From Magallana gigas (lineage: Eukaryota), in the NCBI RefSeq assembly GCF_963853765.1, contig NC_088861.1:32550001-32614000 (forward strand): a stretch of DNA of 64,000 nucleotides, written 5' to 3'. Made by a program: the position numbers and the translations under genes. Below, one piece after another: positions 6,232 through 49,904 of this stretch (position 1 is its first letter; the number at the start of each line of letters is the position of its first letter). The notes beneath the pieces were generated by a model, which was not told where the DNA came from, ran no database searches, and saw only the letters and a program-made list of their open reading frames with translations.

Positions 6232-8160
6232 CTAATTCTTGTGTTTGGCCTTCATCCTGCACGAACAAGCTTCTTGACATAGATAACAACAACTGCACTG
6301 AGAACACTCACATTCAATACAGTTTAGTTTACAAAGAAATTGTGATATAGAGGAGTATCCAATGAAATATGAGAGCAAAGAGTCCCTAAAACACTTTGTC
6401 CTGCATTCGTCCAATGAACTACATAACTCCTTCATTTCATCTGAAGCATGAAGTAATGATATAGGGGTTACAAAGTACATGGCCTTTGTCTTGCGTCCAT
6501 CTCGCCCTGCCCTACCAACCTCCTGCCAATAGTCCATTACAGAGCTACATGCACCCCGGTGAATAACAAGGTCAATGTCTGGGATGTTGATCCCCATACC
6601 AAAGGCGATAGTGCAGTCGTATCACACTGTCTGGCTTTGAAATATCATGCAGTATGTACTCAAGATCTTTGGTAGCCATTCCAGCATGATACAAAGCAAT
6701 GTGGCTGTTGCGCTGAACCTTTTTTTGTTCAAAATATGCACCTTCTTTTAAATGGCCCAATATATCCCCGTAAAGGCGGTCACCTTGACTCAAGCTCCTA
6801 CAATTTTGAAGAGTATACCCAGTAAATACTTTTAAATATAAATTGAAGTATGAACCCCAATTTTTTTTTATCTTGCAAACAATAGCTTTTTATAGATTAA
6901 TTAACAATTAACCTAACATATACTAAAGTCCTCCTGGTTTTGATACCATTTTCTTTAATATCATTAAACAGCCATCCAAGTTCTTAAAAAATATCTTTTG
7001 ACCTCTTGTATTCCAGGTAAATGTTAGGTCTGTTGAGTTTCAAAATTAAAACATATCATAACAAAACATTTCAAAACACATTGAGAGTACAAGAATATTT
7101 TGGCAATGAAATTTTCAGTTGTGGTCATTCGCTATACATGTGTACTTTGATCCTTCATTCCACAAAAGTTACCTGTCAGGATATGCAGTGAACAGTTTTA
7201 GACCAGGTAGGTGAATTCCGCTCGTGATGTGCTTCAGAATCTGCTGTGTGCAGGTTGCAGTAAGCATAAGGAATGGCGTTCTTGGAAAATGGGAGCGAAA
7301 GTCTTCGAGTCTTGCAAAGGTTGGACGAAACGTATCACCCCTTTAACATTTCATCAAATGTGCTCTCATCAGATATATGTATATTCTAGAACCATAAGAG
7401 TTTCTTATATTGTTGACATTATATATGTAATGGTAAAATATAAAGAAGGATGAACAAATATGAAGAAGTCACTATGTATGTCACTTCATATGAACATACA
7501 ACGTTCATATATAATTAACAAGAATCAGAACACCTTAAAATTACCTCAAAATTAAATTGAAACTCCTACCAGGACTCCAAAATGTGTGCCTCATCTATGG
7601 CAATCAGTGCAACTCTGTCACGATACAAACTGGAATTGAGTATTATGTTTCCCCATGACTCGAAATTTAGAAGTGTCACTGGTGACATATATAGAATTGA
7701 ATATTCACCTGTCTTTATGGCTATATAAATATTAATATATACCCTTTTAGTTCAACTAACCAGAGTTATTTTTTTTTCAAGCACGCTGAACAATTTATTC
7801 AAAGATAAACACAAAATTATATCATACCTTCAATAACCTAATGACTCATTTCATCCATGCCTTTCATGACGGCAGCAGAAATACCATGATCAAATTTCTG
7901 CTTGCACTGATCTATCATAAGACTCTTTAAGGGAGATATGACAATGCAATCATGTCTAACGTCTGACTTCTGTTGATCAAGAATCAAAGGGGGCAATAAA
8001 AAACATACACTTTTGCCAAACTCGGTAGGGAAAACACCCACAGTATGCTTTTTTCCAAAATACTCTCTATCACAGATATCTGTTCGTCTTTAAGTTCGAA
8101 TTCAAAATTATATAGTGGTCTAACCTCTTCGAATATCTTCTTAACATTAAATGCAGCCAT
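6232..8160 (-). pseudogene. RecQ-like SF2 helicase of AcademH-A, multi-exon, disrupted
   Basis: ATG at 8160. Motif I FPTEFGKS, Ia [46 protein letters not shown], and a Cys-rich C-terminus. Contains a frameshift and a premature stop. Confidence 0.85.
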
Positions 8161-8849
8161 AATTATTATTTACAGTGTGAAATTTGTGCATTACGTCATA
8201 AATTCTGCTTTCACGTGAGACAGTTCAAGGGTGTATATTTTCAGACAAACAAAGAACCATAAAGTTGAGAGAAAGTATGCGTGATTAAACGCCTGCATCA
8301 TCGATAATGTCTAAACTAATAAGTAAACTCATAAAAATAGTTGTCAGTGTTTATTTGTTAAGATATAGATCGAAATCAAATCAAATGCCGGTTGTTGTGA
8401 AGGTAAACACGTGAAACGCGAGTTAGAGTTATGCCCCTTTATCACGTGACCAAATAACGAGATCTCACTACTAGGTAAACATGGCTGTCATAAGGCGAGT
8501 TTTTTAAAACGATGACACTCCAAGGCGGAGGATGGCCGTTCGAAACCACTGAAAGGAAAACAAAGTTACCAGAGTTGGGGTAAACTATATGTTTAATTAA
8601 TAAATCCAATTGTTTAGGCGGTTGAATGCTTTTAAAGTCAGATATAATTCCCGAAGCGATCCACAAAAAACGGCGGCGTAAATCGGAGGTTTTTAAAACG
8701 CTTGGATCTGTGACTCTCTGGTTTGTCTATCCGAATTTTTTCAACCAGAGAGCTACAGATCAGCAGCTAGCACATGCGCTACATACTAATTGGCATTGAT
8801 GTTAAAATTCTCCCTTTCAGTTACGTTTTATCAACGTAACTGACAAGAT

Positions 8850-10499: not shown

Positions 10500-12490
10500 A
10501 AAGATTCTGTTTTGACACAGAATCATATGTCATGTATAATACCATATTGTATTATATGATACAATATCATATTACATGATACATCATAACATTAAAACAT
10601 ATGATATTATATTGTATAATATAGTATGATATTGTATTGTATGATATTGTATAATATTTGATACATAAGATGATATTGTATCATATGATACAATATAATT
10701 TGAAACATTATTTTATCATATCAAATGATACGATATCATGTGATAAAGTAAAATATTATATAATACAATATTGTATTATACATATTGTATCATATGAAAC
10801 AATAATATATCATATAAACCAATATCATATTATACAATATCGTATGATACGATAATATATAACAATATCATATAATACAATTTCACATGATATAATTGTA
10901 TATTACAGAAACCATTATCATATTATAAAATATCGTATTATACAATATTATAGATACAATTTTATATTATATAATATTGTATCATAATATACAATACTTC
11001 ACAGAACCATATCATGATACAATATCATATCATAAAATATCAAAATATTGATACAATATCATATCGTATCATGTAACTTTTTACAATATAGCATATGATA
11101 TTATATTGTATCATATTAAACAATAGTGTATCATATCATACAATACTTTATCATAGGAATTATGTTATATCATTTACCAACAACTACATCTTTCTATTAA
11201 GCAGGTTTAAGTGAGGTAGGAGATTTCTTTAGCATCCTTGATAATGGAGATCAGGCTCTGCATCTGAAGCAACCTCTGCGTTTCATTTATAATATAGTTA
11301 AATCAACTTTGCAAGCTATCGTATACAAAACATGTGACCTGTTCCCAAAAAAAACTAAACCTCATCCAGCATCCGTAACATATGGCTCAGATTCAGCATT
11401 CAAGCCTGTCAGGTGCATCAGTATCATAAGACGCATCACCCATGCAAGTTTGGTGAAGATAGGACCAGTAATAACTAAGATATCATCATCAGAGGGCACC
11501 AGCAATTAAAACCTTAACCTTATCCAGCATCCGAAACCTATGGCTCAGATTCAGCATCCATGCCTATCATGTGCATCTGTATTATAAGACACACCACACA
11601 TTCAAGTTTAGTGAAGTTAGGACCTGTAATAACTAAGATATATTTTTAGCATCCTTGATAATGGAGATCAAACTCTGCATCTGAAGCTTCCTCTGCGATT
11701 CATTCATAATACAGTTTAATCAACTATGCAAGTTTGAAATAGTATTATTATGTATGTAACATGTGACCTGTTAAAAAATCTTAACCTTATCCAGCATCGA
11801 AACCTATGGCTCAGACTCAGCATTCAATCCTGTCAGGTGCATCAGTATCATAAAAAGCACCATCCATGGAAGTCTGGTGTAGTTAAGACAAGTAATAACT
11901 AAGATATTATCATTTGTTTCAAAAACTTTAACCAGCTCTTAAGACCTTAACCTCCTCCAGCATCCGAAACCTATGGCTCAGATTCAGCAGTGAAGCCGTT
12001 CATCACGCGCCAACCATAAAAGTTTGGTGAAGTAAGGATCAGTAGTAACTAAGATATTATCATCAGATGTCATCTGCAACAAAAACTTTAACCAGCTCTT
12101 AAAACGTTAACCACCTCCAGCATCCGAAACCTATAGCTCAGATTCAGCATTCAAGCCTGTCTGGTGCATAAGTATCATCCATGCAAGTTTGGTGAAGTAC
12201 GGACCAGTAATAACTTAGATATTGCTATCAAAGGGCACCTGCAACAACAACCTTAACCTGTTCCAAAAACCTTAGCCTCCTTCAGCATCTGAAATTTAGG
12301 ACCCAGATCCAGCATCCAGGTCTTTCAAGTCCATAAGTACGTCCAGATGCATCATCCATGCAAGTGTGGTGAACACAGGACAAGTAATAACTTAGACATA
12401 GGACCTGCAACAAAAACTTTAACCAGGTCCGGACGCCGACGCCGGGGGTATAGCATAAGCTCCCCTTGACTTCGTCTCGATGAGCTAATG
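10500..12490 (-). mobile_element. Helentron-type non-autonomous repeat with ~170-bp tandem array and AT-rich minisatellite tail
   Basis: The - strand begins TTAGCTCATCGAGACGAAGTC...GGCGTCGGCGTCCG. Repeated CAGCATCCGAAACCTATGGCTCAGATTCAGCA units at 11350-12400; degenerate ATACAATATC array at 10520-11170. Same family as 57425-60170. Confidence 0.65.
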
Positions 12491-22941: not shown

Positions 22942-23069
22942 NNNNNNNNNNNNNNNNNNNNNNNNNNNNNNNNNNNNNNNNNNNNNNNNNNNNNNNNNNN
23001 NNNNNNNNNNNNNNNNNNNNNNNNNNNNNNNNNNNNNNNNNNNNNNNNNNNNNNNNNNNNNNNNNNNNN
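22942..23069. other. Assembly gap (128 N)
   Basis: Run of N. Confidence 1.
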
Positions 23070-41496: not shown

Positions 41497-43624
41497 TCAT
41501 TGTAATACAAAAGTATCAGTGTCACTATCTTCCACCACATCCTCACATTTAACACATTCATTAATCTCAAGTAAGGTTTCTAGCTCGATCTTTTCACACC
41601 TACCACAATTGCACTTAACCTCACATATATCGCAACAAACATGAGACTCATTTTGAATACAGTTGGTTAACTCTTCTAAAAAATGAGACAATAGATTCCT
41701 CCTTCTACAATCTTTATTATCTAAAAATTGTCTAACATCTTTGTCAACATGTCTTTTATGTTGGGAACTATACAAAATGATGGCAGATAATGGCTGACCA
41801 TCTCTCCCAACCCTACCTAATTCTTGTACAAAGTCAACAATGCTTGTAGGAGGACAATACAAAATAACTGAATGACAATATGCAATATCAATACCCATTC
41901 CTAATGCTGATGTAGCGACAATTATATTCACTTCACTATCAGACCTTGAAAGTTGTTCTATAATAAATTTCTTTTTTTCAGATGGAGTCTCAGAGTGTAA
42001 CATTTCTATTTGACTTTTGTTATCAAACTCAGAATGCAAATAATGAAACACATTAGCAACATCTGCAATGGATTTGCAATATATAAAATTTTTTGGTAAA
42101 ATAATTGAATTAGCAGCAGATACTAACCAATACATGACAGATGCAATATCATGATCTATCTTCTTAACACATAATTTGATGTTAGGTTTGTCCGGAGACA
42201 CCGAAACAAAGTTAATATCACTTGACTTCAGGCACATTACTTTCATGACCCTGTTCTTGATCTGTGTAGTGCATGTAGCACTCAACGCCAAAACGGTGGC
42301 AGATGGGTGTAAGGTGCGAAATTCCCCAACATGGCGAAACCATCTTCGGAAAACAACTTCTTCTTCATCGGTTTCATCACCACCCCTAATTTAAAGAAAA
42401 GCTATTAACAGCAATAATTCAATCATTTACTGTAACAGTTATGAAGATATGAAAGAGTTAAAAAGTTTCCTTATGAAACTATAATTTTTGTATCATCAAG
42501 ATCTATTTGAATGTAACAAGCATGTTTAACTACATTTATAGGTATACACGCATTATGGTGCCTAAAGAATAGGTGCCCCATTAATTTTGTTTATGTTAAA
42601 TGATTAACACAATTTACCATGGTAAGATATTATAGTTCTGGCTACAACTTAGGCATGGAAAAAAGAGCGTGATGAAATGTCTAATTTTTGTAAAAGTGTA
42701 GAGTTGTAAAAACAGGGAGTGGAAAATAATTACCACGTAGCAATTGTATGAAATTCATCTATAACCAGGAGGCCAACATTCAGCTTCTGTATATGAGAAC
42801 GCCACTGGAGATCTCCAACAAGCGCTTCAGGCGAGGCAAAGATGATGTCAACGTCCCCTGCTTTTATTCTCTCATCTCCCTCTGCGGAATTACCTATTCA
42901 ATAATTTATATTCAATAAGTCAAATATGTCAAATGTGTAAAAATACTACAACAACCTGTAAATCATTGCAGTGCGATTGTGAAATAAGTCAACGCTGTAC
43001 ATACCAAAGTATGATAGCATTTTCAGCATGTCAATGTAAAGATTTGTTACAGAGTGGGTAGAATTACCCCATGATCAGTTTTTAAAGATCTGCTATAATC
43101 AGCAAGTTTCTTCAAATTTGACAAAGAAGGACTAAAACGTTTTATTAAGTAGATGTATTGTTTTTAATGAAAAAAGTAGGGGCGAAATCTAAATTCACAT
43201 ACTTTTTGGCACGCAAATATCATATGTACACCATCTTAAAACTCTTGATGTACCGTCTATTGCTATCGCAAATCTACATGCTTAAATTTATGTTTGTTTT
43301 GTTTTTATAATCGGCTAATGAATGAAATCTCTCTTAAATACCTTTGTACTCTACTATGAGGCCTGCAACACCGTTCAGACGGTTGACTTGATCCTCCATC
43401 AAAGCCACAAGAGGACAGCAAACTACCACCTTCGGCGTCTCTTCGCGTTCACCAAGTCGCTCTCTCATCGCAGGAATGAACATCTGGTAGGGAAGAGACT
43501 TCCCATATCCAGTAGGAAGGACAGCTAACGTATGTCGCTTACCAAGAATCGAGTCTAGTATCTCTTTCTGCTTATCTTTTAATTCTACTTTAAACAACTG
43601 AACCACTTTCTCGTACGACGCCAT
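41497..43624 (-). CDS. RecQ-like SF2 helicase of AcademH-B (3 exons: 43624-43342, 42893-42734, 42385-41497; 443 aa)
   Basis: GT-AG joins keep the frame. Motifs LPTGYGKS, PLVALMEDQ, IDEFH, LSAT, ATSALGMGID, QELGRVGRDG, and an RQC-like CRR...CCDIC. The acidic tail may be frameshifted. Confidence 0.88.
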
Positions 43625-44106
43625 TTTGGATTGATATATCGAACTGGATAAAGAAACAAGCATTTTCATTGGTCATTTTTTTATTAAGTAAGGTCATGAC
43701 ACGGGGTCACCAGAACGTGACCTGAACGGGGTTGCGTTAGATCCTTTCACGAGCGGTATCCATATATAACAGAGAGCGAGATGAAAGGTCTAATTTTAAT
43801 TACATTGCGTAATCCCTTAATTGAAGTAACTCTCTATATTTACTTTTCTATTATTCTCTATTGTTAAAAATGTTTTGTTATCTATATGTAATTGATGGCC
43901 ATGTTTAATTATACTCATAACAATCAGAAATTACTTTATTTATTATCATTTTTGACGACTTGTTGTTTTGTATGATGCCACAGTTAACATTTCCCGTGCT
44001 TTCTGGTCGGCGCGACCACGCTGCGAGGGTGACTTTTCAATTCCCACTAGAGCTATAATGAGTTCTTTAGTTTAATTTATAATCTTTTTTTTTGTGTCCG
44101 GTTTTT

Positions 44107-46680
44107 TATAAGGAATAAGGAATCATTCTTTGAGTATTATGAGGTGATAATTTCGGTCGGGGCGTGGTCAAATCAATTAAAGCCCGAAGGGCTTTATGAT
44201 AGATTTGACCACGCTCCGACCGAAATTATCACCTCATAATATTCAAAGAATGATTCCTTATTACTTATATTTATATTATTTCTAATGTGCACGATTAAAG
44301 ATCTAATAATTATAACATTTTTACCGTTGTTTTCTTTCGTATAATTATGCAAACCCCACTGGCGCCCCAGGAATACGTCATTTGACACTTGCATCACACG
44401 TGTGTTGTACATGAAAACTCACAGACATGTATTGAAGAGTCAAATTTGCAAATTTATTAAGTCGATACAACAAAATATCAAATCAAATATCATTTGATTT
44501 TTAAAAACAAATGTGTGTAGTTGCAAAATAGTAAATAACTAGAGTGTTTATTTCGTGATAGCGGAAGGTACTTTCCTCCTGCGCGGTAAGGCGGTCGATC
44601 TACACCTCAGTCGAGATTGTACTTGATGGTAATTGAACAGTTCTCAAAGCGGGAGTTATTCAAAACTCCAGATTTAATGCTCGAGTCGGACATGGTGGAA
44701 CAATTAAGTTCATTTTTGACAGGTAAGTTGGAATTTTCAGAATTATAGGGAACGATTTGAAGATTCTGTGATTGTTGGCCGGAAATTACACATGAATCTT
44801 CAGATGGATCATTTATTTTGACACTTGCGGTGGTTATTGTAGATAAAGTTGCACTCGCACTTTTTTTTGGGGTAGAAGACAGTTCACGATTATAGCTACG
44901 TATGGAAGCTTCGTTGCGATGCCCGGAGAAGTACATGATGTGTCTTGCTTCAAATCCAGCGTCGTTCATGGCCTGAATTGCTGTCGCTCTTAGACAGTGA
45001 GCTGTGTAACCTTTGCACCCGGCGGCCTTGCAAATATCCGGAAGGAAATTAACATATGATCGCTTTTTCATGGGATCGGCTGTGTACCATATGTTGCAAT
45101 CTTTCGGGTAAGAAATGGCATCTTTCACGCATTTATTGAAAAGATGAGACGCATTTGGGTCCGTTTTAGACAAGAAGAACTTCAACATCTTCACAGGACA
45201 AGTTTCGTTTCCAGTTTCATACATTCTTTTGTCGTTCAGTGCTTCAAGTTTGTGAATGCCCCCTTGATAGTTTTTTTGTTTTGTTTCATGCTTCAAACAA
45301 GCATATATGGAGCCTTCTTCGTCAACTTTGAAATCGAAGGAATCTACCCGAAGCTGATGATGGAATTCAAGACCACGAGACACAAAATGTATCGCGATGA
45401 TGTACCACATTGCAAGTCGCAGATTGACTGGAGAAGAATATGCACTCTCCAGGTAAGCAGAAATTTTCTGTAAATCTGATTTGTGAATGATCTCCTTATG
45501 AGTTGTAGGGCGAGAAGTTCCAGTGACCATTCTATGCTTCATGAGACCGGTCAAACTTTTATTTGCAGTTTTGAATGCTTTATCGTTTACAATGTCTATA
45601 TTTCGACCGATGTCGGATAAATGCCTGTTTATGGCGGCTCTGATTGCTTTCATGGTATTTTTATGATATTCGGAGGTATGCTCCTTTTTCGGGTTTTGGG
45701 GTTTTGCTTCACAGTAAAAGCGACTGAGTTTTTTCGCCAGATCCTCCTCGCAAATCTCAGCCATATCTAGAGGGACTCCAAACGTTTCAATATGCCAATC
45801 TGTAATAGAAAACGCACAATGATATCCATGTTTTGACAGTCATTTGAGAAAGAACTGTAACTGCATAATATGGGCTGTTTTTGTTTGCGTTTAATTGCTG
45901 CTTACTAATATTCACTTTTTAAAAAAAAAAGAAGCGTACCTGTAAGAATCTTTAAACCCCATTTGGTGCTTTGTTTTGTAGCCTTTGATTGTGTGAGTTC
46001 CTGAAATCCTTTAATTTCGTCGTCGGAAAGCTTGGCAAAACGAGTACTTGTTGGCGTTTCTGGGGCTGGCAACCCGGGATCATCGGATTTTTTCAAATCG
46101 GCAAATGCCTGTTGGGTTAATGTTATATCGAAGTCCGAATCGATTATTTCGGATAGAAAATTGTCAAAATCAGAATCAAAACCTTCTAATTTTAATTCTG
46201 GCAGGAGGGCTTCATAATTATCCCCACTAAATACTTCAAAATCGCCATATTTTAATGCATCTGATATATCGTCGTTCATGGTGGCTGCATTCGATCGAAA
46301 TAAAAAATGAAGTGATCAGCAGACGATCATTATAAGAAATCTATTCATCAGCAGACGAGCCGTTTATATAAAATATTTAAATTGCATATTAAGATATTTT
46401 TCTATAAATTTTATTTTAAATGGTAACCTTTACATGCTCATTTTAATATTCAATCATTTTGTGTGCGAAAAGAAAACATTTCAAAACCACTACTTTTTTT
46501 ATTTAGCACATGCAATGTATTACTACGCGCGCCGTGCAGCCATTACCGTTTTTCGGTTTTGCTATAAGACACGCCCATTTTGTGTCACTCATATTTTTTG
46601 ATGTTATTCGGTTTTAGGGTTCAAAATTGATTTGTAATGTTATCACAGACAAAGACAGGTGAAAATGAAAATATTTTTAA
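44107..46680 (-). mobile_element. Crypton-type tyrosine-recombinase element (right boundary approximate)
   Basis: YR gene flanked by a long palindrome (44107-44269) and by a conserved block (46480-46605). Both also occur in the mini copy at 51080-51315. Confidence 0.8.
44607..46279 (-). CDS. Tyrosine recombinase, Crypton/DUF3504-like (2 exons: 46279-45940, 45799-44607; 510 aa)
   Basis: Phase-1 GT-AG intron gives ...KILT D WHIE.... Catalytic pattern SRG.E, K, HCLRAT, SGHRNEASIRSY. No stops seen. Confidence 0.9.
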
Positions 46681-46851
46681 ATATTCAATGCACAAATTTC
46701 CAAGTACACGCCCCGCGCTTGTTTATTTCATTTGTTGATAAAAGAAGCCTTTTGAGAGAGACTTTTAGAATAACTTTTCAAAGCTGTACAGATTGACAGA
46801 CATATGGCTTCACAGGTATGGAAGTTGAAAGATAAGTATTGCTAATATATA

Positions 46852-47077
46852 CTGTGGAATCATTAGATTTCGTGGTGGCTCAATTGTCATGGATTTCGTG
46901 GGTACCTCTCATCCACGAATTAACATCCTCCACGAATTATATATTAGGGCTATAAAGTCATACAATTGTACTTCGTTTTGTAGGTATAAGAAAATACACG
47001 AAATTACGTCCCCACGAACCTATAAAATTTCAGGAATCCACGAAAATTGGCCCCCACGAAAATTGATTATTCCACAG
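46852..47077. mobile_element. 226-bp TA-flanked MITE
   Basis: TA|CTGTGGAAT...ATTCCACAG|TA with internal CCACGAA repeats. Confidence 0.85.
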
Positions 47078-49904
47078 TACACCCTTGAATAGATAATAAT
47101 AAAAGTAGGGCTGAAAACCAGACTACGGGAGTTCTGTAATTGATAGCCGTTCGATATCAGGAAAGTTCATATTCAATTGTTTGGCTAGGATTGCACATAA
47201 AAAAAGGACAAATATGAAAAGGAATGGATCTTATATACGGAGGTAAGATATGAACATTGTAACAAAAAATCAATCAGCTTTTTACATTTTAGGGGTTTCT
47301 TTAAATGCGTGATATACAATCTAGGCCGATCGATTGGCAATCCGGACAAACATGTTTTTCACCACCATAGTGTCCTTTCTGATATATTTCATTTTATCAA
47401 ATCAAATATACAACATGACTACCAAATCAAATGAAATATATCAGAAAGGACAATAGGAACAAAAATTATCATAAATTTGTATATCATGAGATCTATACCT
47501 TCATATCTATATATTTCGTCCATGCAAAAAGACTTTATCAAAATATCCATTCCAAAGGTTGTAAAATGCATATTTATGATACATAGGTAAATATCAAATC
47601 TCTGTAAATTACACAATACATGTACTTGTACTACTGATTTACAGCTGTCTGCCAAGGCCGGGTCAATGAACGTATCGTTTCCTGATAAGAATGTGCCGGT
47701 CTCAAATAGCTTAACTTACTTATAATGCTAGCTTGGGATAGGCAATATTTTTTAATGAATGCACACGGACATATATTATGGAAAGTTTAAAAGTCTATTG
47801 CGCATATTTATATATGTCGGTCATACAGCAATGCAAGATGACACGTTTAACCTTGAAAAGTTTAACTTCGCCACGATTGCCTTCTCTGGAATTTTGGAAT
47901 TTAACAATACAACATCTGTATTTAGGCTGTCATCAACAAATCTCACGTACGTGTATTCATTGTGACATAAGGTTTGAAGAAGCACATGTATATGCTGGAA
48001 AAAAACCCCGCAGATTTACAGACCTTCCTGAATTAGGTAAAAACGTATTGATCATTGACAATATATTAAAACTTTTCTATAACCTAAGTATAATTGATCA
48101 ATGTGCAAGATTTTGTTGATGAGGCAGAATTCAGGATTTAGAAAATTTTTAGAACGTCGGATGCATAAGTTGAAAATGTACTTATTTTTCTTAGTTTTGA
48201 CATTAATTCCACGTGCGCGTTAAAATCAATGATCGAGATGATAGAAAATCGAAAGTCAATTTTGCAGAGTTTTGTGACAAAAGCTACATTATTTATCGAG
48301 TAAAAACTGTATGAAAGTTCTAGGTAGGCGGAATGCAAATGTATATATTTAACACCAGCATCATGAATTGAAATTATATATCTAGTTTATTTAACAGGGA
48401 ATGCGATTTGACTGAACTGGTACGTATATTATATATAAAATCCTATAGCTTGCAATGTCATTTTATCAAGGAAAATTCTCAAGGACTTGTCATACTGTTT
48501 ATTCTGCAAAAATACGCCGGAAAATCACACATAATTGGGTATGTATGAAACAGTTACAGTTAGTAATTGCGAACTCGGAAGACAAAAATGCATTTCATAT
48601 ACAGGTTGGGCACAGTAACCATATTGAGGAATGAATCCGAATGATTACGCCAAACGGGAACTATATATTCCCCTTTTCAGTACAAAAAAAAAATAAAAAT
48701 AAGAAATAGATAAAGTATAACTTCCGATACTGCACCAATACCGTCCCAAGAAGTTTTAGATATACTAAGGGATACATCTCCGTAACAGTACGGTTCAAGA
48801 AAAAGTTGTTTGCCAAAAGTTGTTGCATTACATGTATTCTAATGCGGATTTATATTAAAAAAATATTTTTTGCACTTAAAATTTGTATCCTATTTAAACT
48901 ATTATATCCCAAAAAGGATATTACATCCCATTTGGGCGATTGGTCCCAACCTGTTAAACTTTGTTTATGAAAATATTTGGGCTTATTTGATTTGCACGAA
49001 CACCAGTGTACATTTTTGTATTGTATATCATGTACACTTGCATGTACATTTTAATGGTGCTGTTTAAGGAAGTACATGTATAATATGGCAGAAGAAGCAA
49101 AATTTAGTAAAGGATCTAATATTCAGCGACGACATGAGGCTTTTTTCTCAATATAAATGTTAATACAATATATAAAAGACAACTTGTATGTTACTCAGTC
49201 TTTACCCTTATTAATATTACCTAAAATTATTTGTCAAGTTACTCATCCACCATTTTGGTGTCCGTGCTACATCTGCAGCACACGCCCCTCGCTTAATATA
49301 GAAATATACCTGATGTACACCAAAAAAAACCGCTACACTAGTGTAATTGAGTTTCAAAGTGTAGACACGGTGTAAACTTATTTGAAAAATCAAGCGCGCC
49401 TATCATGAATGCGTGCACATACGAAACCGAAACTAACACTTGTACGTCACAACGGTAGTAGAGTGAATTTTCTCCACACTATTCCGCCCTATCATGGATG
49501 TTGTTTCATTGAACTCAAGTAGACGTTTGCGTCGTATAAAAATTTGCTGTAGTCACTGGTCAAAAAATTTAATAATTCATTATGTAAAAAGAGTTCATCG
49601 GTTAAGGTTCAGGTACATATGTAACATTTTTTTCTATTTTTGAGCTCAAACAACTACTGCATCTTGTGGAGGGGGTGGCAGGGGATGCAGCAGGTTCAGG
49701 AAAAATTGTTTAGAAACACCCTTGCCTGGCTCTCACCGTTGGTTGAATGATCTTGGAACTCATAAGCAACTGTTTACAGTTACACATCTTTGTCGCACCA
49801 TCACAACTTTAAGGTGGTATGGGACACGTTGTGACGTACCATTTATCAAAATGAAATAAAGTGTAGTTTTACAAAACGTTTCTTTCCTAAAGTTTTCACC
49901 TAAC

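Follow-up and report, generated by a model that had tools for sequence, protein, structure and literature searches.

A terminal palindrome as the likely attachment site of an autonomous Crypton in the Pacific oyster

The genome of the Pacific oyster, Magallana (Crassostrea) gigas, contains a tyrosine recombinase (YR) gene that lies next to a long palindrome on contig NC_088861.1 (RefSeq assembly GCF_963853765.1). We analysed 64,000 nucleotides of this contig, from position 32,550,001 to 32,614,000, hereafter called the window; positions are counted from its first letter. Judged by gene content and by ends shared with other copies, the segment at 44108-46673 is an autonomous DNA transposon of the CryptonA type. 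Sequence comparison and folding suggest that the hairpin at its 3′ end is most likely its attachment (recombination) site.

The Crypton and its copies

The element lies on the minus strand and measures about 2,566 bp, with each end placed to within about 3 nt by alignment with four other copies. Its sole gene has two exons. Exon 1 (45940-46279) holds 113 codons plus 1 nt and is followed by a 140-nt GT..AG intron (45800-45939) and by exon 2 (44607-45799), which encodes the core-binding and catalytic domains of the YR and includes the stop codon. Both exons are 100% identical to RefSeq protein XP_034320215.2 (M. gigas, 510 aa), so our 510-aa model is the annotated one. The initial annotation of this locus had described an uninterrupted gene of 510 aa; the gene is indeed intact and of that length, but its reading frame is split by the intron. 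The only other open reading frame (ORF) of at least 80 aa in the 2.57-kb unit is one of 109 aa at 45144-45473 on the plus strand, which overlaps exon 2 in antisense and is probably spurious.

A spliced contig from the Logan collection (L001) spans 46361-44540 and lacks exactly the intron, joining 45940 to 45799-45805, while an unspliced contig (L002) covers 46419-44520. An AATAAA polyadenylation signal lies at 44547-44552 on the minus strand. Given this signal and the contig ends at 44540 and 44520, the mRNA probably ends about 250 nt before the palindrome. The transcript-like contig suggests that the family to which the window copy belongs is expressed.

The gene product is, by domain, profile, fold and catalytic-residue evidence, an intact, Cre-like tyrosine recombinase of the CryptonA/DUF3504 type, in agreement with the initial annotation. 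Exon 2 matches the Pfam families DUF3504 and Phage_integrase above their cut-offs and QRICH1 more weakly. The proposed R..K..HxxR..H..Y pattern was borne out in an alignment of 27 proteins, where R141, K175, H267, R270, H293 and Y302 (exon-2 numbering) fall in invariant or nearly invariant columns. A PDB search with the single sequence returned a chance match only, so that profile and fold searches were required. A profile of the 27 relatives placed HxLR...GH...Y in register with the integrase 3nkh and with XerA (5hxy), and an AlphaFold model (predicted local distance difference test score 74) matched QRICH1 (9hjt) best, along with many Cre-loxP structures (E ~1e-6). No reverse transcriptase, RNase H or methyltransferase is encoded in the unit, as is typical of Cryptons, and this separates it from DIRS, Ngaro and PAT elements. 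Further YR fragments were not found within the window.

We compared the window copy with three other copies in M. gigas (L008, L009 and L011) and one in M. angulata (L010). These match the window between 46674-46681 and 44095-44108 with 97.1-98.7% identity, and they lie at different loci with unrelated flanks. In all five copies the similarity breaks off at the outer base of the palindrome, which makes the palindrome the 3′ terminus of the Crypton rather than a neighbour. Its occurrence independently of the ends of the YR family, a possibility raised at the outset, thereby did not materialise. On the sense strand the ends of the element read (TA)TATTTACATTTTCAACTG... and ...GATTCCTTATTCCTTAT. 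The flanks are AT-rich, and no more than TA or TAT is common to the two junctions. As is characteristic of Cryptons, the copies are dispersed, end alike and lack both long terminal repeats and a true target-site duplication. Clustering at 90% protein identity revealed many further paralogues in M. gigas and M. angulata. Taken from these sequences, the family is multi-copy, young and transcribed.

The palindrome could alternatively be an independent foldback element or miniature inverted-repeat transposable element (MITE) that lies beside the gene by chance. Similar solo hairpins do occur, in the scallop Argopecten irradians (L007, 440-603) and in contig L005 (12910-13066), and one arm recurs without the gene 7 kb away in the window. 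However, the gene, spacer and hairpin form one unit with common ends at five loci, and no duplication flanks the hairpin in the window family. The solo hairpins and the fragment at 51 kb are better read as deletion derivatives. We rejected this explanation, which we consider hardly credible.

The fragment in question lies at 51080-51323 on the minus strand. Its first part (51080-51163) is 92% identical to the inner arm and inner flank of the palindrome (44192-44271) and, 27 nt further on, 51191-51323 is 85% identical to the 5′ region of the element (46478-46616). The gene and the outer arm are absent, as are the final ~55 nt of the 5′ end. We read it as an old, truncated and internally deleted relative of the Crypton. 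A reading as an empty target site was discarded in favour of this internally deleted, 85-92% identical relative.

A terminal hairpin with a fixed apex

The palindrome is 163 bp long. The initial annotation had reported arms of 68 nt with three mismatches, and a repeat search recovered the same structure with arms of 71 nt that are 94% complementary and 21 nt apart. The outer arm (44107-44177) carries the end of the element, ...ATTCCTTATTCCTTAT, at 44108, and the inner, gene-proximal arm (44199-44269) has the base TAAGTAATAAGGAAT on the sense strand (44267-44253). From the stop codon at 44607 to the inner base we measured 338 nt, close to the ~340 bp first noted. As single-stranded DNA the palindrome folds with -79 kcal/mol, against -15.5 +/- 3.6 kcal/mol in 200 shuffles (z -17.8). 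The three arm mismatches and the orientation of the asymmetric centre are identical in all five copies. In one M. gigas copy (L009, 7877-8040) a single arm pair has changed on both sides, from A-T to C.C, a non-compensating and unexplained change.

At the centre of the palindrome lies the c(GAA)g apex that had first drawn attention to it. The apical mini-hairpin (44177-44197, plus strand) reads AAAGCCC-GAA-GGGCTTT, antisense to the gene, with a C-G-closed stem of 8-9 bp and the loop GAA at 44186-44188. Next to it is an asymmetric internal loop of 2 nt against 4 nt. Of the two strands of the M. gigas hairpin, the one with GAA folds more stably than the sense strand, by 2.6-4.9 kcal/mol.

Since the hairpin lies downstream of the polyadenylation signal, and long hairpins can feed small-RNA pathways, it might have a regulatory or silencing role (transcription stop, insulator or source of hairpin small RNAs) unconnected with the chemistry of transposition. 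The contigs of the family, however, stop ~250 nt short of the hairpin, and no Rfam family reached its threshold. Such a role would also leave the terminal position, and the split box and 5′-end complementarity described below, all unexplained. We therefore consider it very improbable.

The layout of a gene followed by a hairpin recurs in other Crypton families. We compared relatives with 41-59% protein identity to the window YR (best aligned segment) and found the layout in Saccostrea, Argopecten, Mytilus and several metagenome contigs, while the arm sequences are unrelated between families. A 22-nt arm pattern, sought in metagenome contigs by exact matching, gave no match. The hairpins lie at 8221-8392 in Saccostrea cucullata (L003, 305 nt past the stop), at 11351-11572 in A. 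irradians (L007) and at 6971-7129 in Mytilus californianus (L012, 171 nt past the stop). Among the metagenome contigs, L013, L026, L035 and the pair L024/L025 carry one; the last two, together with L022, L027, L029, L034 and L037, make up family F2. None of the contigs appeared to be of human origin. The hairpins measure 140-200 bp and lie 0.2-0.4 kb beyond the stop codon where this is known.

Some of the hairpins are rearranged. The outer arm is partly tandem-duplicated in the scallop copy (L007, 11446-11572) and in metagenome copy L026 (2288-2488). In two F2 copies (L027, 2045-2140; L037, 2632-2740) the centre or one arm of the hairpin is deleted, an outcome that either the instability of long palindromes or a collapse in assembly would produce. 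In Mytilus, a second TTC-capped palindrome of 143 bp (L012, 7420-7561) lies 290 nt past the hairpin and has different arms with GTAACA/TGTTAC.

Conversely to the arms, the apex is conserved: the c(GAA)g tip was kept across families while the arms changed. In every family tipped by a mini-hairpin, the loop is TTC, TAGC or TAC on the sense strand, so that the antisense strand carries GAA, GCTA or GTA. Such loops belong to the GNA and GNNA types, which form very stable DNA mini-hairpins when closed by C-G, as has been described for d(GNA) loops in particular (PMC3201870, PMC13037366). Across families the apical stem measures 8-11 bp and often reads ATAA-N5 / N5-TTAT. Of the two sides of the internal loop or bulge, the 5′ side of the sense strand is always the longer, by 2 nt (once by 3 nt). 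In an alignment of eight tips over 41 columns, the loop is closed by C-G throughout, pairing extends to 92.5% of the cells and 10 of the 15 pairs have changed on both sides, values that none of 500 shuffles reached. Pairing as such is expected of any palindrome; it is the non-palindromic features that stay fixed which are informative.

GAA mini-hairpin motifs occur at phage origins. The oyster hairpin could accordingly be mainly a replication or priming signal of an excised single-stranded or circular form, acting as a complementary-strand origin or fold-back primer, with recombination using the short termini only. Its strand specificity and the high stability of GC-clamped GAA mini-hairpins in single-stranded DNA (PMC13037366) would fit this. 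On the other hand, the boundary of the element coincides with the hairpin base and is spanned by a conserved box, the element codes for no replication protein, and flip/flop isomers are absent from the five copies. A main role in replication thus appears quite improbable.

A base box split between the two ends

We next consider the base of the hairpins. A conserved 15-nt box, GTAAATA-TAAGGAWT, straddles their inner base. A search for GTAAATATAAGGAAT with at most two mismatches yielded 20 matches in 408 kb, about 15 of which are at hairpin bases on the sense strand. The last bases of the outer arm, AWTCCTTA, are the complement of the second half of the box. The first half, GTAAATA, lies outside the palindrome, in the inner flank that occupies 44268-44279 of the window on the minus strand (ATAATATAAATA), and reappears as its reverse complement at the 5′ terminus of the element. 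This 5′ terminal box (46656-46673, minus strand), where the similarity among the five copies begins, reads TATTTTCATTTTCACCTG in the window copy and TAT(T/C)TACATTTTCAACTG in the other four.

The pairing between the two ends was found in three families. In M. gigas, TATTTACATT pairs with TATTTATATT at 9 of 10 positions, and in Saccostrea TATTTCCATT pairs with TATTTTCATT, also at 9 of 10. The Saccostrea 5′ end was located by its similarity to that of M. gigas, within a match starting at 5630 of L003, and its motif lies 371 nt upstream of the ATG. For family F2, all 10 positions of TATTTACACC agree with the reverse complement of GGTGTAAATA, and contig L025 runs exactly from one of these ends to the other. 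Between families, two positions have changed on both sides. These three families share with attC sites, the recombination sites of integrons, a topology in which a palindrome marks the 3′ end and the 5′ end pairs with its inner base. Within the box itself, the fifth base is mismatched alike in the M. gigas copies (window 44263/44113) and in F2 (L024, 1684-1843), with TAAGTAAT in the inner and TAAGGAAT in the outer arm, and this may be a conserved asymmetry. The terminal TCCTTA resembles (C/T)CCTT, the site of poxvirus topoisomerase IB.

One metagenome contig appears to contain the two ends joined. In L035 (NSIT01000692.1) the first 127 nt (1-127) are repeated at the end (1316-1442) with 126 of 127 positions identical, and the outer hairpin base is joined directly to TATTTACAT. 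This indicates a head-to-tail junction, in a circle or a tandem, of a 1,315-bp gene-deleted Crypton derivative. It is the sole and indirect hint of excision as a circle and reintegration.

These observations bear on what the palindrome does. Of the roles first suggested for it, that of recombinase substrate is the best reading, because the 5′ end is complementary to the inner flank and the crossover would fall inside the completed hairpin. We propose that the element is an autonomous CryptonA in which the 163-bp palindrome serves as a 3′ cis-acting site, most likely the attachment site, where the GAA-tipped strand would fold and the YR would exchange strands at the base of the stem. To this proposal as a whole we assign a probability of roughly 60%. 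Integration would split the outer copy of the box, such that ...AWTCCTTA becomes the 3′ end of the element and TATTTAC... its 5′ end. With the outer box split in this way, an excised circle or head-to-tail junction would complete the hairpin by ~10 bp. Strand exchange would then take place inside the stem, at about TTA|TAT, and the predicted circle junction is ...ATTCCTTA(T) joined to (TA)TATTTACATTTTC.

The GC-rich apical stem with its c(GAA)g tip, together with the internal loop on its fixed side, would mark the antisense strand, and the apex may nucleate the folding of this strand or the extrusion of a cruciform. At the stem base, where the box is paired, the YR would recognise it and carry out strand exchange with AT-rich targets of the TAT type, as happens at integron attC or CTX-phage sites. 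We infer the binding of the YR, the position of cleavage and the folded state of the site. More generally, bivalve Cryptons may recombine through a folded single-stranded or cruciform hairpin, with the YR acting on the strand that bears the c(GAA)g tip and with a box formed from the paired ends of the element, although we advance this only tentatively.

Classical YR sites work as duplex DNA, and the oyster site might be an ordinary one of this kind. The arms and boxes would then be double-stranded binding sites for YR protomers or host factors, the site would not fold, and the apex would be incidental or bound by protein as a duplex. One protein could bind both the 5′ end and the inner flank, which would then simply be short terminal inverted repeats, and the weak energy gain of the completed stem is in line with this. 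Conversely, the core of a duplex site would need the two junction halves to be inverted copies, and AWTCCTTA and TATTTAC are not. Moreover, ~130 bp of perfectly paired but non-conserved arm is retained in every family, and both the loop orientation and the side of the bulge are fixed. Considering both sides, we think an ordinary duplex site unlikely.

Several points weigh against a folded attachment site. The case for it is one of sequence comparison and folding computation. Complementarity is expected of any inverted duplication and is therefore by itself no proof of selection on the folded form. Three quantities lend folding weak support, namely the energy of stem extension, the stability of the GAA strand and the wobble mismatches. 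Extension of the stem by the 5′ end gave -17.7 kcal/mol versus -14.2 +/- 1.6 kcal/mol, a small gain that 10 of 300 shuffles equalled, and on the GAA strand G.T mismatches outnumber A.C mismatches by 5 to 1, too low a count for significance. The window copy differs from the other four by a substituted 5′ box and by one pair fewer in the apical stem. When its joined ends were folded there was little extension of the stem because the 5′ box is mutated; the other copies yield a gain that is real, if small. The AT-rich sequence allows the crossover to be placed only to ~3 nt. The predicted 5′ ends of the Argopecten, Mytilus, L013 and L026 elements were not located among many AT-rich near-matches, and the junction in L035 is possibly part of a tandem array rather than a circle. 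Lastly, no such hairpin was found near L004, L006, L014, L015, L023 and some others, so the hairpin is common but perhaps not universal. These relatives may be dead or collapsed copies.

Known systems and the meaning of the site

The oyster element resembles the CryptonA group (Goodwin 2003; Kojima and Jurka 2011, PMC3212892) in that it is multi-copy, carries a single DUF3504-type YR gene, lacks a reverse transcriptase and long terminal repeats, and has junctions that share at most 2-3 nt. The proposed circle-and-integrate mechanism is also alike. Animal Cryptons have been reviewed, up to 2026, as lacking terminal structures (PMC3212892, PMC13465315). Kojima and Jurka report that terminal repeats were not found in them and nowhere use the words 'hairpin' or 'stem-loop' (PMC3212892). 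A 2026 paper on DUF3504 CryptonA elements states that Cryptons have no inverted repeats and did not arrive at defined boundaries. Neither hairpins nor palindromes figure in the published descriptions, and a literature search on Cryptons with a hairpin or palindrome returned no description of such a structure. In contrast to the published Cryptons, the oyster lineage ends in a hairpin of 140-200 bp whose apex and base box are conserved, and its 5′ end is the complement of the inner flank.

An integron cassette has a split R′ box, and its first nucleotides are paired with the inner base. Like attC and its integrase IntI, the oyster system combines an imperfect palindrome at the 3′ end of a mobile unit, conserved in sequence only at its base, with a predicted crossover in the stem, unpaired features that would fix the strand and an enzyme that is a tyrosine recombinase (PMC5027507, PMC4792948). 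In attC the folded bottom strand alone is recombined and the product is resolved by replication. In the oyster site the orientation of the loop, the side of the bulge and the 5-to-1 wobble mismatches would mark one strand. The oyster site further differs in its eukaryotic host, in a recombinase carried by the unit itself, in a much longer stem with a conserved mini-hairpin tip, and in an unpaired feature that lies close to the apex, in contrast to the extrahelical bases beside the boxes of attC. In attC these bases separate the R and L boxes; the box of the oyster site, GTAAATA-TAAGGAWT, is different in sequence. Because the box sequence and the position of the unpaired feature differ, the likeness to attC is one of working principle and not of membership.

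Folded single-stranded DNA also serves as attP(+) of CTX phage, where it is used by XerCD, and IS200/IS605 elements have subterminal hairpins. Both resemble what we propose in that a strand-specific folded hairpin is the site of recognition or recombination. Unlike the oyster element, CTX is a single-stranded phage genome and IS200/IS605 elements rely on an HUH transposase; we know of no single-stranded stage in Cryptons. In DIRS elements, which are retroelements, inverted terminal repeats occupy opposite ends. Their internal complementary region, mentioned in PMC13465315, is comparable: in an element that encodes a YR, this internal sequence beside the 3′ repeat is the complement of the joined termini. 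In the oyster Crypton, unlike in DIRS, the arms are adjacent and the junction is off-centre.

Telomere-resolvase sites and parvoviral hairpins likewise pair a YR-fold enzyme or a mobile genome with a long palindrome. Telomere-resolvase sites are symmetric about the cleavage axis and form the hairpin ends of linear replicons. The analogy with them that had been drawn initially did not hold, and we rejected it: with its odd loop and unequal internal loop the oyster hairpin lacks a symmetric centre, no copy or family shows the opposite orientation, and the element sits within chromosomes. Parvoviral termini occur as flip/flop isomers and need an HUH Rep protein. A rolling-hairpin terminus of this type was dismissed too, given the single orientation in the five copies and all families and the lack of a Rep gene.

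The surroundings of the Crypton contain other repeats. A pair of 105-bp inverted copies with 98% identity (33161-33265 and 43705-43809) brackets RecQ-like helicase ORFs at 41497-42291 and 43334-43669 on the minus strand. Immediately beyond the 5′ end of the Crypton are two MITE-like inverted repeats with 30-nt arms (46850-47079 and 47368-47455), the first of which starts with TACTGTGGAATCATT and resembles an inverted repeat in Saccostrea echinata (L004, 5496-5735). The window also includes a run of N at 22942-23069.

Cryptons are, to our knowledge, the least understood class of eukaryotic DNA transposons, and we know of no transposition assay, defined ends or defined substrate for them. They are the source of the ZMYM, QRICH1, KCTD1 and KIAA1958 domains of vertebrates. 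A population study of C. ariakensis found Crypton-A insertions to be the most polymorphic among the named DNA transposon superfamilies (bioRxiv 10.64898/2026.02.10.705023), which makes the feature described here relevant to oyster genome variation. The conserved terminal hairpin and the split base box define exact oligonucleotide substrates, a predicted cleavage point and a predicted circle junction, and thereby make the mechanism of Cryptons directly testable. The recurrence of the hairpin in oysters, scallops and mussels makes it a candidate for the recombination site of the Crypton class. If bivalve Cryptons do recombine through such a folded hairpin, they would mirror integron attC and CTX-phage recombination in a eukaryote, and no Crypton substrate would have been defined before this one. 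If the folded form works, it would extend single-strand recombination by tyrosine recombinases from bacteria to animals, and could offer a compact, self-contained eukaryotic pair of recombinase and site.

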